The notes beneath the pieces are model-generated. The model saw only the letters and a list, made by a program, of their open reading frames with translations. It did no database searches and was not told where the DNA came from. From positions 62,001 through 126,000 of IMG/VR virus record IMGVR_UViG_3300027834_000005: a stretch of 64,000 bases of DNA. One strand, written 5' to 3'. Below, piece by piece: positions 35,586 to 39,465 of the stretch. The position numbers were made by a program, and so were the translations under genes. The first letter of the stretch is position 1; each line of letters starts with the position of its first letter.

Positions 35586-35801
35586 TGGTCGCTCTAGACC
35601 TAAGCCGATACACTGTGCTTAGGTCGTACTATGTAGGCAGCATCAAAATGGCTACTATCACTAATCATGGTAATAGCCATTATCTACAAGTCAACTATTC
35701 TCGCATAATAGAATTTTATGAAAAACAATTTTATAAAGCATTGACAAAGTAACCGTCTATGCTATTATAGGTACACATTAACAAGTTCTGAGGGGAATAG
35801 C

Positions 35802-36122
35802 ATGGGCATTATCAAAGTAGCGGTATGGAATAAAGATGATTTTGAAGATCATGACTATAGAGATATTCTAAACCAAGAAACCCATGACGGTAAAAAGTAT
35901 TCCACTTTGATGGGAGTACCAACGGGCACCGCCGATAAAACTATCAAAGAGATAATTATGGCCTCTGGTGAAGCAGCCGAAACTAATCTTGCATTCGAGA
36001 TACTTAGGCCAAAATGTATCTCTCAGTTCTGTATAGCCACTGGCTTATCTGGCGGCACTGCAACCAATGAAGCTCATGCAGCATACATAAAAGCTTACAA
36101 TGAAGTAAATAATATACTTTGA
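35802..36122 (+). CDS. Hypothetical early protein
   Basis: N-term KVAVWN resembles 46758 gene. Confidence 0.7.
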   Translation: MGIIKVAVWNKDDFEDHDYRDILNQETHDGKKYSTLMGVPTGTADKTIKEIIMASGEAAETNLAFEILRPKCISQFCIATGLSGGTATNEAHAAYIKAYNEVNNIL

Positions 36123-36179
36123 CATTGAGCGTAGCCATGCTATTATAGGCACACATTAACAAGTTCTGAGGGGAACACC

Positions 36180-36653
36180 ATGACAGTATCATTCGAAGAC
36201 TTAGCAGTAAAAAAATTAGCGATGGTTCGCGGCTGTTTTGGCACTGAGAAAGCAAAAGAAGTATTCATCACAGAAGTAGATGAAGATATAAAAAACGGCG
36301 AAGCCGGTATCTGCTACTCTACCCCTGACGGCGCGTCTGGTTGGGCATATATCGATCAAATAGATAGTGTATATTCCGCAGAGTCTATGCCGAATATTCG
36401 TAGAAAATTTATAGAACATGCCTCATCTTGTGGCGCGGTAGAAGTTGACGGTAAGCTATACGCTAACCCTCCGCTATCCGCCGATAACGATTTTAGACTT
36501 GACACGACAGGTCTCATTGTATCTGTACGTGCGTTAGACTTCTTCAATGACGATGTGGCATGGTGCGACGACAAACTATGTTTTGTTATCACAGAACTAG
36601 ACGATTCCAAGTACACCATTAAATTTTACAACCTTGTACCATACGGAGAGTAG
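36180..36653 (+). CDS. Hypothetical early protein
   Basis: Family-1 leader. Confidence 0.75.
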   Translation: MTVSFEDLAVKKLAMVRGCFGTEKAKEVFITEVDEDIKNGEAGICYSTPDGASGWAYIDQIDSVYSAESMPNIRRKFIEHASSCGAVEVDGKLYANPPLSADNDFRLDTTGLIVSVRALDFFNDDVAWCDDKLCFVITELDDSKYTIKFYNLVPYGE

Positions 36654-36655
36654 CA

Positions 36656-36835
36656 ATGCAACGTTTTGATGATAAAGTCCATACTGGACAGACAGCGCTA
36701 TTCAATAAAAAGGTCGTTATACCACGTGCCCAAGTTATTGTCAAGCCAAACAAATCGAAAGAAGTTGTTGCTTCTGGTAAGAACTTCAACTATAATGCTT
36801 CTCATTGTGTACCTGTATACATTGACGAAGTATAA
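36656..36835 (+). CDS. Small hypothetical protein (59 aa)
   Basis: GGAGAG RBS; MQRFDDKVHT...YIDEV*; stop abuts the ribozyme. Confidence 0.55.
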   Translation: MQRFDDKVHTGQTALFNKKVVIPRAQVIVKPNKSKEVVASGKNFNYNASHCVPVYIDEV

Positions 36836-36900
36836 CCGTTCTGATGAGCTTGCGAAATACAAGCGAAACATGGAATCATACGATTCTATGTCAACGGACT
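36829..36900 (+). ncRNA. Hammerhead ribozyme (type I)
   Basis: ccgtt CTGATGA gcttg-cgaaata-caagc GAAA catggaatc-atac-gattctatGTC|aacgg; all three stems pair; cleavage 3' of 36892. Confidence 0.9.
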
Positions 36901-37210
36901 GCGAGACGGGCTGGAAAACTGTCTCGTAAACAAGTGAGGTGGAAAATGCTACCACTAATGCTAGGCCTGCCAGCGGCTATTGGACACTTGACTATGGTTT
37001 TGCAGACTGCTATTGATCTATCGCCTCACGTGATATAGTATAATAGAAATTAAAACTGTCCTAATATAGAAGGTCTCTATATAAGAGACACAACTGGGGA
37101 AACCGTGCCAATGCAGATTTAACTATATGTAAGATTGTGATCTATTACAAGCCACAGAAAGTGGGTACTAAGTCACATTATAAAAGCATATGGTTCTGTG
37201 ATTGGCGCGT
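36893..37210 (+). ncRNA. Candidate structured ncRNA released by the hammerhead
   Basis: Non-coding; stems gcgagacgg/ctgtctcgt, gtgaggtg/cgcctcac, cgtgccaat/attggcgcg. Confidence 0.45.
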
Positions 37211-37275
37211 AGCTAATTCTTGCATTCCATGCTCTACTATGTTATACTCCTCAAAAATTACACAGGAGTTATAGC

Positions 37276-37839
37276 ATGGATGCTATCACAGCACAACAAG
37301 CACAGCAATATATTGACGCAGTAAGCGTATCTACAGAACAAGTGGCGGACACCATTGAAGATGAGCAATCATACGAGATCGTTTCTGTTACTAAAGTGAA
37401 GACAGCGGCCAAGCACAAAGAAGAAACAATCAATAAGGTATCGCGTTCAATCGCCATACTGCCATTATCTGGCAACACTTACCGTGATATGGTTATAGAA
37501 TCAGCCAAGTCCATGGGGACAGATGCTGAGGTGGCGGATAGCTTCACAGTATCAGACACGTTCTATGAGCATACAGACCTATACCCACTATGTAAAGCTA
37601 AGAGAAACGACACCATGTATTTGTATGGTATCTATGAGCGCTCCTCTAAGCCCGTTTACGTGCATAATGGCGTAGAGCTAAGCAAAGAGCAAGTGGCGGA
37701 GTTCCTGACGCCTGCAGAGGCTAAGAAGCTGCTTGGTGACACTGTAACAGTCACAGAGAACAAAGCCAATAGCTTGACACATAAAGTCAATGCGCGTACA
37801 GTGAAACTTGATAACGTTAAATCTATTAAAAAGATTTGA
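37276..37839 (+). CDS. Hypothetical early protein (paralog of 49482..50102)
   Basis: Shared QVAE..T...AKKLLGDT...RT.K..NV. Confidence 0.8.
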   Translation: MDAITAQQAQQYIDAVSVSTEQVADTIEDEQSYEIVSVTKVKTAAKHKEETINKVSRSIAILPLSGNTYRDMVIESAKSMGTDAEVADSFTVSDTFYEHTDLYPLCKAKRNDTMYLYGIYERSSKPVYVHNGVELSKEQVAEFLTPAEAKKLLGDTVTVTENKANSLTHKVNARTVKLDNVKSIKKI

Positions 37840-37888
37840 CACTACCCATAAGTTGCGGTATCATTAGTTAAATTATTGAGGACACACC

Positions 37889-38275
37889 ATGGCCATTAAA
37901 TCTAACGTTTCAATCGGTGACACAGTTGACTGGTACGATAGCGGTGATAATACATGCTTCGCACTCAACGTAACAGTTACGTCTATTAATGGTTCACGCT
38001 ATAACTTACGTGCTCCTGATGGCGGTGTTATAGTCGCACGTGATCATGAACTATATGAAGTAGGGACTACTCCCTATGTACCTCATGACCATTCTGTTGA
38101 GAACGTTATTGAAGAAGTGGCCACAGAATGGTTTGATGACAACTTCGATGAAGTCGCTCTTGAAATCTTGGAATCGTCTGGCGTTATATCTCAAGCTGAA
38201 GGATTCCGTATGTCTTGCTTGGCAACGCTACAGATAGAGCTAGCCAGTAAGTTAGAAACTATTTCGCATAAATAG
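37889..38275 (+). CDS. Hypothetical early protein
   Basis: Promoter and GAGGA RBS. Confidence 0.75.
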   Translation: MAIKSNVSIGDTVDWYDSGDNTCFALNVTVTSINGSRYNLRAPDGGVIVARDHELYEVGTTPYVPHDHSVENVIEEVATEWFDDNFDEVALEILESSGVISQAEGFRMSCLATLQIELASKLETISHK

Positions 38276-38328
38276 TTGACTATCACCTCAGTTACTGTAT
38301 TATGTACTTACTGACTGAGGAGATTACC

Positions 38329-38715
38329 ATGCAACATAACAATGTGTTTAATAGAAACTTATTAGCTAAACTTATCATTGAAGCTGGTAATGGTACTGCT
38401 ACTCGCGCTACTAATAGCAGGGGCACCTACATAACGACAGTGTATAGCACTGAAGATATAAAGTCCGTCCGCCGTGTAGTTCGCATGGCCAATAAGATGA
38501 TTAAGCGAGCTGGCGTGTCCAGCGGTTATAAGATTGATATTAAAGGCCGATTAGGTAAGAAAAACCCTAACGCCCATAAGTATGTCACGCGTGACAAGTG
38601 GGGTAAAGGGATAGATCAATGGGATGGCAGAATTCGCATAGAAGATGCCACAAGATTCGATGTATATGTTTATTTCAAATCTAGGCAAGAAAGTCTTGAC
38701 TGGCTAAAGAATTAA
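38329..38715 (+). CDS. Hypothetical basic early protein
   Basis: Promoter at 38276, GAGGAG RBS. Confidence 0.75.
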   Translation: MQHNNVFNRNLLAKLIIEAGNGTATRATNSRGTYITTVYSTEDIKSVRRVVRMANKMIKRAGVSSGYKIDIKGRLGKKNPNAHKYVTRDKWGKGIDQWDGRIRIEDATRFDVYVYFKSRQESLDWLKN

Positions 38716-38729
38716 AGATATAATGTACA

Positions 38730-38977
38730 ACATGAACTGAAGGGAGAATACCCTACACTACAATCGTTTGATTGGTTCATGGCAGGTAAGTGTCCGGTTC
38801 GATTCCGGTTGACGTATGATATCATATCCTATGATGTTACGTGCTTTTAGGAACTGCAAGCCATCGGTGGTGACTCAAAAGGTCGATGATCCCGCTAGCA
38901 ACGTACTGCTTCAGAAGTGATACTGTTATGTGCTTTGTAGCCTTCGGGCGGTAAAGAGTACATAGCGATTATCATTA
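38730..38977 (+). ncRNA. Candidate structured ncRNA upstream of tRNAs
   Basis: Promoter 38696-38724; several hairpins, a T-loop-like ccggttcgattccgg and a cUUCGg-capped long stem. Confidence 0.45.
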
Positions 38978-38978
38978 C

Positions 38979-39055
38979 GCGCTTGTAGCTCAGCTGGATA
39001 GAGCATCCGCCTTCTAAGCGGAGGGTCATTGGTTCGAATCCAATCAGGCGCACCA
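38979..39055 (+). tRNA. tRNA-Arg(UCU)
   Basis: Cloverleaf GCGCTTG/CAGGCGC, anticodon loop CT-TCT-AA, GGTTCGAATCC, encoded CCA. Confidence 0.95.
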
Positions 39056-39077
39056 CATTAACACACGGATAAATACA

Positions 39078-39236
39078 ATGCAAGTACTAACAGCAATAGC
39101 TTTTACAATAGCAATATTAGTTGTGGCATTGATATCCATCTCGTTATGTAATACTTCTCTATACTTCATGAATAGAAGACGCGCTACTAAAGCGGGTAAG
39201 AAAGTAAGAGAGAAACTTTTAGGGCCTATAGCATAG
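39078..39236 (+). CDS. Small membrane peptide between tRNAs
   Basis: 52 aa, TM plus basic tail; overlaps the 5' end of the second tRNA. Confidence 0.4.
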   Translation: MQVLTAIAFTIAILVVALISISLCNTSLYFMNRRRATKAGKKVREKLLGPIA

Positions 39237-39298
39237 TCGGTTAATGCGTTCGACTCATAATCGAGGGAGGTGCGGTTCGAATCCGCGTAGGCCCACCA
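39222..39298 (+). tRNA. tRNA with CAU anticodon, probably Ile2 (lysidine)
   Basis: GGGCCTA/TAGGCCC, loop CT-CAT-AA, C4/C5 acceptor pairs typical of TilS substrates, CCA. Confidence 0.85.
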
Positions 39299-39358
39299 AA
39301 CAGTCCAGTTAGCTATCTGGTCATGACAAAAATAGCATCCATCCTCTACTCAAGGGGC

Positions 39359-39393
39359 AAAAGGGCATTAAGTTAATCTTTCTGCCCTTTTTT
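39359..39393 (+). terminator. Terminator after tRNAs
   Basis: aaaagggca...tgccc followed by a T-run. Confidence 0.6.
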
Positions 39394-39465
39394 ATTGCCT
39401 GCCTATTGACAACACATCTCACAATGCTATTATGGTTACACATTAAACGTTCTGAGGGGAACACG

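Follow-up and report, generated by a model that had tools for sequence, protein, structure and literature searches.

In a giant marine phage, a sequence with the look of a hammerhead ribozyme adjoins the stop codon of a small gene and is followed by a long gene-free stretch. This raises the question of whether a self-cleaving RNA frees the front end of a structured non-coding RNA from a polycistronic transcript, as proposed in an earlier note made from the sequence alone. The DNA examined, referred to here as the window, is a 64,000-nt stretch comprising bases 62001-126000 of a 347,232-bp IMG/VR phage record (IMGVR_UViG_3300027834_000005) with 40% G+C. The same sequence lies on a 410,284-bp metagenome contig; near-identical DNA occurs in a marine metagenome run, and relatives of about 95% identity occur in marine sediment runs. 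The first 55 kb of the window consist of small + strand genes, and around the locus most genes are preceded by a near-consensus sigma-70-like promoter. Neither a BLASTN search (distant mode) with the locus nor a TBLASTN search with the product of the downstream gene, P0002, found a match among 50,697 phage records; a tail-fibre-like protein gave only weak hits to PA5oct-like Pseudomonas phages. Coordinates of the features discussed below are collected in Table 1.

A type I hammerhead motif and its occurrence in the genome

The sequence reads CCGUU-CUGAUGA-[GCUUG CGAAAUA CAAGC]-GAA-[A CAUGGAAUC AUAC GAUUCUAUG U]-C/AACGG, where the slash marks the predicted cut. This is a complete hammerhead of type I topology, with stem I open, stems II and III capped, and all core nucleotides in place; the stems have 5, 5 and 10 bp. 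The position of the cut is that given in the earlier note, and the motif begins one base after the stop codon. The note had also described a bulged extension of stem I. This exists behind a 4-nt bulge, but it is only 3 bp long, we did not find it conserved in relatives, and it overlaps the alternative helix P0 described below.

To estimate how often such a motif would arise by chance, the genome was scanned with a descriptor requiring stems of at least 5, 5 and 6 bp. Three motifs were found, all on the + strand, whereas one hundred dinucleotide shuffles of the genome gave 0.09 loose hits per genome and no strict hit. A search for other hammerhead topologies (types II and III, or a 1-nt insertion) yielded only one weak extra type I candidate, at genome 221378-221561, which we take as chance. 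It should be noted that the Rfam models Hammerhead_1 (RF00163) and Hammerhead_3 (RF00008) do not reach their gathering thresholds (34 and 48.5 bits, respectively). At a permissive threshold only a partial RF00008 match appeared in the window (17.3 bits, E 1.1), and one of the other two motifs (hammerhead 2) matched RF00163 at 20.8 bits. The long stem III and short stem I are unlike the seed sequences, and we regard this as a limit of those models and not of the core features.

Table 1. Features of the hammerhead locus and of the tRNA-linked hammerheads. Positions are those of the window unless stated otherwise; all are on the + strand.
Feature	Position	Description	Basis
Upstream promoter	36119..36146	Sigma-70-like, TTGACA-16-TATTAT with TG; would transcribe the two upstream genes, the hammerhead and the RNA	Consensus scan, 11 of 12 matches; no other + strand promoter-like site between it and the hammerhead
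P0003	36180..36653	Gene for a 157-aa protein of unknown function	ORF; no Pfam or PHROG hit; no homologue other than itself
P0001	36656..36835	Gene for a 59-aa protein; TAA stop at 36833-35	Conserved at 51-60% identity in all five relatives that keep the RNA
Stem I extension	36829-31 with 36898-900	AGU with ACU	Read from the sequence
Hammerhead	36836..36897	Type I; C17 = 36892, predicted cut between 36892 and 36893	Sequence, descriptor scan, shuffles, covariation
Stem I	36836-36840 with 36893-36897	CCGUU with AACGG
Core, first part	36841-36847	CUGAUGA
Stem-loop II	36848-36852 with 36860-36864	GCUUG/CAAGC; 7-nt loop CGAAAUA
Core, second part	36865-36867	GAA
Stem-loop III	36868-36891	10 bp, from A36868-U36891 to C36877-G36882; loop AUAC
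Structured non-coding RNA	36893..37219	327 nt if it runs to the next promoter; 3' end not defined	Six lineages with the same conserved blocks and helices
P0, 5' strand	36896..36899	GGAC; overlaps the stem I 3' strand and pairs with 37058-37061	In-register covariation at three positions; weak shuffle support per sequence
P1 hairpin	36901..36927	GCGAGAC/GUCUCGU; loop carries CUGG at 36911-36914	All 10 model pairs change on both sides
P2 three-way junction	36931..36990	P2 36931-36/36985-90; P2a 36938-42/36952-56 with the conserved loop AAAAUGCUA (GAAAUGCAG in relatives); P2b 36964-67/36975-78 with a loop carrying CCAG at 36970-36973	Strand tables; covariance model
Most conserved stretch	36997..37028	GUUU (helix A, 5' strand, 36997-37000); GCAGAC 37002-07; variable bulge or hairpin; CCUCA (helix B, 5' strand, 37024-28)	Helix B covaries; helix A only weakly supported
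P0, 3' strand and motif	37058..37069	GUCC (37058-61), then the conserved single-stranded motif UAAUAUAG	Strand tables and shuffles
Junction block	37095..37111	UGGGG-AAAC-CGUGCCAA; 3' strands of helices B and A, then 5' strand of helix C	Conserved blocks; strand tables
Helix C, 3' strand and tail	37202..37215	UUGGCGCG (37202-09), then palindromic tail UAGCUA (37210-15)	Strand tables
Downstream promoter	37220..37248	TTGCAT-17-TATACT, weak here; TTGACT or TTGACA-17-TATAAT in relatives	Read from the sequences; below the threshold of the consensus scan
P0002	37276..37839	Gene for a 187-aa protein	Homologues used to fetch the related loci
Second hammerhead motif	genome 205025-205076	2526-2577 of L002, the genome stretch carrying the tRNA array	Ends exactly at position +1 of a tRNA-Tyr(GUA) gene
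Third hammerhead motif	genome 205175-205225	2676-2726 of L002	Ends exactly at position +1 of a tRNA-Tyr(GUA) gene

Conservation of the hammerhead in related lineages

The product of P0002 has nine metagenomic homologue clusters at 51-64% identity. The contigs carrying these homologues keep a common order: a gene for a 58-59 aa protein, a gap of 426-535 nt, a DUF5983 gene, sometimes a gene for a protein of about 80 aa, and then the P0002 homologue. Each complete gap has a hammerhead at its start. After duplicates and near-duplicates were set aside (L006/7, L009, L012 and L027-31), six lineages remained, the window and five metagenome contigs designated L003, L005, L008, L011 and L013, of which L003 and L008 are close. 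One relative, L015, lacks the small gene, the gap and the ribozyme. The core nucleotides (C3 U4 G5 A6 N7 G8 A9, G12 A13 A14, the A15.1-U16.1 pair and an H17 that is not G) are present in all six lineages and in the two other motifs of the genome. N7 is U or C, L011 and L013 carrying CUGACGA, and L011 has one extra U after A9. Loop II is semi-conserved (CGAAAUA, CGAGAUU, UGAGAUU, CUAAACA), but we found no convincing covarying partner for it in these sequences.

RNAalifold recovered the three stems and left the core unpaired. A covariance model built from the six orthologues found all six, and also the two other hammerheads of the genome, which were not in the training set, at E about 1e-5 and with no false hit in 112 kb. 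On that alignment 99.3% of cells pair and 17 of 20 pairs show changes on both sides; none of 500 shuffles reached any of these measures, and slid controls paired at 30-38%. Such model-made alignments lean towards the structure. The only pairs that never vary are G10.1-C11.1, A15.1-U16.1 and C15.2-G16.2, as expected for this ribozyme class. In the sediment strains of about 95% identity, the three substitutions inside the hammerhead all fall in loops II and III.

A conserved structured RNA downstream of the predicted cut

The gene-free stretch noted earlier is real: it runs 440 nt to the next ATG and folds with z = -3.4. From the cut site to the -35 box of the next promoter the six lineages measure 303-327 nt, and they share a hairpin loop GAAAUGCAG and the blocks GUUUCGCAGAC, UCGCCUC, GUACC-ACAAUAUAG, GRGGAAAYCGUGCC and GCGUAGCUAAUU. 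No open frame is shared among the lineages. Folding by domains, together with tables of the paired strands, gave one architecture: hairpin P1, a three-way junction P2 with arms P2a and P2b, a short helix A (GUUU/AAAC, weak support), helix B (CCUCN/N'GRGG), a small variable hairpin, a long variable hairpin C closed by CGUGCC/GGCGCG, and a short tail. G-U pairs, for example the invariant U-G in helix C, place the structure on the + strand.

Since MAFFT alignment followed by RNAalifold misaligned the helices of the 5' domain, a seeded covariance model was employed instead. A model seeded only on L003 and L008 recovered L013 (E 8e-16), L005 (2e-8), L011 (2e-5) and the window copy (E 0.002), the last at 36893-37010, starting exactly at the cut site. 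On the resulting alignment 95.6% of cells pair, 22 of 25 pairs change on both sides, and 0 of 500 shuffles reach this, although the alignment is fitted to the model and the window row is misplaced in P2b.

Helices B and C covary in register, and two apparent tertiary features do so as well, each resting on few independent changes. The P1 loop carries CUGG and the P2b loop CCAG in five lineages, but in L011 they are CCCC and GGGG; this is one evolutionary event, but it changes three positions on each side. In helix P0, the first bases of the cut RNA pair with the conserved internal motif, the pairs being GGAC/GUCC (window), GGUAC/GUACC, GGUAAA/UUUACC, GGUACA/UGUACC, GGUACAC/GUGUACC and AUAGGA/UCCUAU. 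Anchored on the invariant GG/CC, three positions change on both sides. Taken one sequence at a time, such short helices are not rare in shuffles (p from 0.03 to 0.9), and the case for P0 therefore rests on register and covariation. P0 overlaps the 3' strand of hammerhead stem I by 2-5 bases, so the two pairings exclude each other, and it crosses helices A and B, which makes it a pseudoknot. Pairing of the cut 5' end with the GGAAACCGUG block, and of the 3' tail with junction strands, was inconsistent between lineages. The tail directly after helix C is a palindrome in every lineage, UAGCUA in four, GCGC plus GAAUUC in L005, and GGCC in L011, but this likewise rests on few independent changes.

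The RNA matches no Rfam 15 family, including GOLLD and ROOL; nothing relevant was found at E up to 10 in the window stretch or in four relatives. It lies between a stop codon and a promoter and is thus not an intron; its likeness to group I introns is only a loose one in topology. It has no tmRNA or tRNA module: ARAGORN found only the two ordinary tRNAs in the window, and the 5' end of the RNA pairs with an internal segment and not with the 3' end. GRGGAAA resembles CR-I of RNase P RNA only superficially. 6S RNA and riboswitch classes were also considered and rejected. The RNA is single copy in the genome. Exact and degenerate DNA patterns found nothing in IMG/VR, only the phage's own 410-kb contig plus 7 chance hits in JGI metagenomes, and 13 hits in 185,579 prokaryote genomes, about what chance predicts and none confirmed by nhmmer.

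Hammerheads adjoining tRNA genes

The two other hammerheads lie in a tRNA array. Each adjoins an 83-nt class II tRNA-Tyr(GUA) gene with an encoded CCA, and the acceptor 5' strand of the tRNA is the 3' strand of stem I. With the Rfam tRNA model one of these tRNAs scores 33.6 bits, and the other is detected only as tRNA-Sec, at 27.8 bits, against 39-69 bits for the other tRNAs of the stretch. They may therefore be poor RNase P substrates, although this is inference. The arrangement is that of the engineered hammerhead-tRNA fusions termed transzymes, in which a type I hammerhead liberates a 5'-OH tRNA that is active in translation (PMC3675464). Those are man-made; hammerheads 2 and 3 of this genome look like the natural counterpart, and the window's hammerhead applies the design to an RNA of about 320 nt.

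A proposed pathway and its alternatives

These comparisons support the core of the earlier reading, that a hammerhead releases a structured non-coding RNA from a polycistronic transcript, although in the absence of RNA reads the cleavage itself, the order of events and the stability and abundance of the products are inferred. That the operon is early, as the note had suggested, is likewise an inference; the promoter upstream is sigma-70-like. We consider the following pathway likely. Host-type RNA polymerase would start at the upstream promoter and transcribe two small genes and then the hammerhead. The ribozyme would fold first, using the first five bases of the downstream RNA as the 3' strand of its stem I, and cut after C36892. 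By known hammerhead chemistry, the upstream mRNA would be left ending in the compact ribozyme body with a 2',3'-cyclic phosphate, and the downstream RNA would start with a 5'-OH. The 5-bp stem I would then melt, and the freed 5' end would be captured in P0, completing and locking the mature fold and preventing re-ligation. The product would be an RNA of about 300-330 nt, its 5' end made without RNase P. Our best guess is that it is a trans-acting, protein-binding or self-associating phage RNA made from host-polymerase promoters, and probably not a leader of the next gene.

The alternative that the hammerhead processes or insulates an mRNA, with the structured stretch serving as a riboswitch-like or stability element in the 5' leader of the downstream gene, appears unlikely but is kept alive by several observations. 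No terminator-like site or second ribozyme follows the RNA, so read-through transcripts would carry it as a leader, the next promoter is weak in this phage, and polycistron processing has been proposed as the role of bacterial hammerheads (PMC6765202). However, all relatives have a near-consensus promoter between the RNA and the next gene, and the RNA is conserved although that gene differs, being DUF5983 in relatives and P0002 in the window; DUF5983 is absent from this genome. In addition, the 5' end of the RNA is built into its own fold, and the two sister hammerheads adjoin tRNAs, not mRNAs. A chance motif or inactive relic is very improbable, despite the Rfam scores, given the shuffled genomes, the invariant core and compensating stems in six lineages, and the restriction of changes to loops in near-identical strains. 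Least likely of all is that the region encodes a small protein: a 64-aa ORF (36844-37038) has its ATG inside CUGAUGA, but it has no Shine-Dalgarno sequence, no family hit and no relatives, open frames in the other lineages differ in frame and position, and the substitutions are compensatory for RNA helices.

A dedicated ribonucleoprotein with the co-transcribed 59-aa protein would be compatible with the proposed pathway, but is doubtful. The 58-59 aa gene lies directly upstream in all six lineages, L015 lacks both the gene and the RNA, and the AF2 model of the protein is a small SH3-like beta barrel (pLDDT 77) of the SH3, Tudor or Sm kind. However, no significant PDB match was found (best E 0.4), and more distant homologues of the protein have no gap and no hammerhead downstream. 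More speculatively, the RNA might found a new class of large, tertiary-structured phage RNA that self-assembles or is itself catalytic or ligand-binding. Self-assembly would use the palindromic tail stacked on helix C and the CUGG/CCAG loops acting between molecules, as in ROOL and GOLLD, but the palindrome could equally be a DNA-level site upstream of the -35 box. On this rather unlikely view, hammerheads in this phage clade take over the RNase P step for chosen RNAs, producing 5'-OH ends that a phage ligase could join or circularise. The genome encodes RtcB (434 bits), the ligase for exactly the ends that hammerheads make. No Archease, Rnl2 or reverse transcriptase was found; the Rnl1 search also found nothing, but its control stayed silent as well, so that this blank proves little.

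Relation to known systems and significance

Hammerheads in phage and bacterial intergenic regions are known, for example in PaP3 and Bcep176 and as a triple hammerhead around ardA in Agrobacterium (Perreault et al. 2011, PMC3088659). These have the same catalytic core and three-stem fold and lie between genes of a polycistronic phage transcript; here, the 3' product is a conserved structured RNA or a tRNA whose first bases double as stem I. Theta (HDV-like) ribozymes next to tRNAs in gut phages have similarly been proposed to replace a host RNase in the maturation of a structured RNA (Kienbeck et al. 2024, PMC10879173), but they are a different ribozyme class and act on the tRNA 3' trailer, whereas here a hammerhead appears to make the 5' end, for a non-tRNA RNA as well. 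RNase P substrates such as pre-tRNA, tmRNA and 4.5S RNA are structured RNAs whose 5' end lies in a terminal helix and must be trimmed exactly; in the present case the trimming would be done in cis by a ribozyme and leave a 5'-OH, not a 5'-phosphate. GOLLD and ROOL are large, pseudoknotted, protein-free-looking phage and prophage RNAs of unknown function, often found near tRNA genes, in which covarying kissing loops turned out to be intermolecular (bioRxiv 10.1101/2024.12.08.627333). Two tRNAs lie 1.8 kb downstream of the present locus, but the RNA is smaller (about 320 nt against 580-800 nt), a 5' hammerhead is not part of the description of GOLLD and ROOL, and multimerisation here is only a guess from a palindromic tail. 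In the literature searched we found no report of natural hammerheads fused to the 5' end of tRNAs or of a large non-coding RNA.

The biological purpose of the thousands of hammerheads in bacteria and phages is an acknowledged open question (PMC6765202), and this genome offers an unusually readable case. Three hammerheads each abut a structured RNA, two tRNA-Tyr genes and one undescribed RNA of about 320 nt, and in each case the first bases of that RNA are the ribozyme's own stem I. This points to a defined job, RNase-P-independent 5' maturation with a built-in strand swap. The locus also yields a candidate new family of large, pseudoknotted phage RNA and what looks like a natural counterpart of the engineered transzyme, and the RtcB ligase of the same genome could tie ribozyme-made ends to RNA repair or joining in a phage.

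Sequence elements near the structured RNA

Near-consensus sigma-70-like promoters (TTGACA-16/17-TATTAT or TATAAT, often with TG) stand in front of most of the small genes in this part of the window, with no + strand terminators between them. Two tRNA genes, for tRNA-Arg(UCU) and tRNA-Met(CAU), lie 1.8-2 kb downstream of the RNA, and relatives keep two tRNAs at the matching place, as judged by Rfam hits in the related metagenome lineages L003, L005, L011 and L013. The bases right after helix C of the RNA form a palindrome in every lineage (UAGCUA, GCGC+GAAUUC, GGCC); this could be an RNA dimerisation site or, alternatively, a protein-binding DNA site upstream of the -35 box. Coordinates of these and the other features are collected in the table.

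Relatives carry a conserved UCCUCAG(U) in an enlarged loop of hammerhead stem III, and in four of them this sequence is complementary to the ribosome-binding site, ACUGAGG, of the DUF5983 gene behind the RNA. The window has neither that loop nor that gene. In one sub-group only, an extra long hairpin of ~100 nt (GGGUAGUAG...CUACUACCC) lies between the 58-aa gene and the hammerhead; it was seen in L003 and L008, and the start of it in L026.

Features observed in the window, in its relatives and elsewhere in the genome (G000:C1, the phage genome record; L002 and L032, stretches of that genome; L003, L005, L008, L011, L013 and L026, relatives)
Feature	Window or genome position	Position in L-numbered sequence
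Near-consensus sigma-70-like promoters	window 35741-39433 (35741, 36119, 37836, 38276, 38696, 39406)	
Palindrome right after helix C	window 37210-37215	same place in L003, L005, L008, L011, L013
tRNA-Arg(UCU) and tRNA-Met(CAU)	window 38979-39055 and 39222-39298	
Loop of hammerhead stem III with conserved UCCUCAG(U)		L003 3025-3040; L005 2650-2660; L008; L011; L013
Extra long hairpin		L003 2887-2985; L008 2506-2603; L026 1126-1189 (start)
Two strongly folded elements	genome about 204885-205024	L002 2386-2525
Two further type I hammerheads	G000:C1:205025-205076 and 205175-205225	L002 2526-2577 and 2676-2726
Two tRNA-Tyr(GUA)		L002 2573-2655 and 2722-2804
Loose hammerhead-like hit	G000:C1:221378-221561	
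RtcB RNA ligase gene	G000:C1:28574-29701	L032

Hammerheads and an RNA ligase elsewhere in the genome

The 347-kb IMG/VR record is part of a 410,284-bp metagenome contig (JGI24723J26617_10000007), so the phage genome may be larger than the record. Outside the window, two further type I hammerheads were found in a tRNA array. Each would cut exactly at position +1 of an 83-nt tRNA-Tyr(GUA), with the acceptor strand serving as stem I. Both are preceded by the same AAACUAAUCAG, and both tRNAs score low with Rfam's tRNA model. Between tRNA-Phe and the first of these tRNA-linked hammerheads lie two strongly folded elements (z = -5.1), a ~55-nt hairpin and a ~70-nt cloverleaf-like four-way junction, neither of which is called by either tRNA tool. 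One more loose hammerhead-like hit, 184 nt long and with stems of 4, 2 and 5 bp, is taken to be a chance occurrence.

The genome also contains a full-length gene for an RtcB RNA ligase (434 bits). Archease, Rnl2 and reverse transcriptase were not found; the search for Rnl1 was uninformative, because its control found nothing. RtcB joins 2',3'-cyclic phosphate or 3'-P ends to 5'-OH ends, which are the products of hammerhead cleavage.
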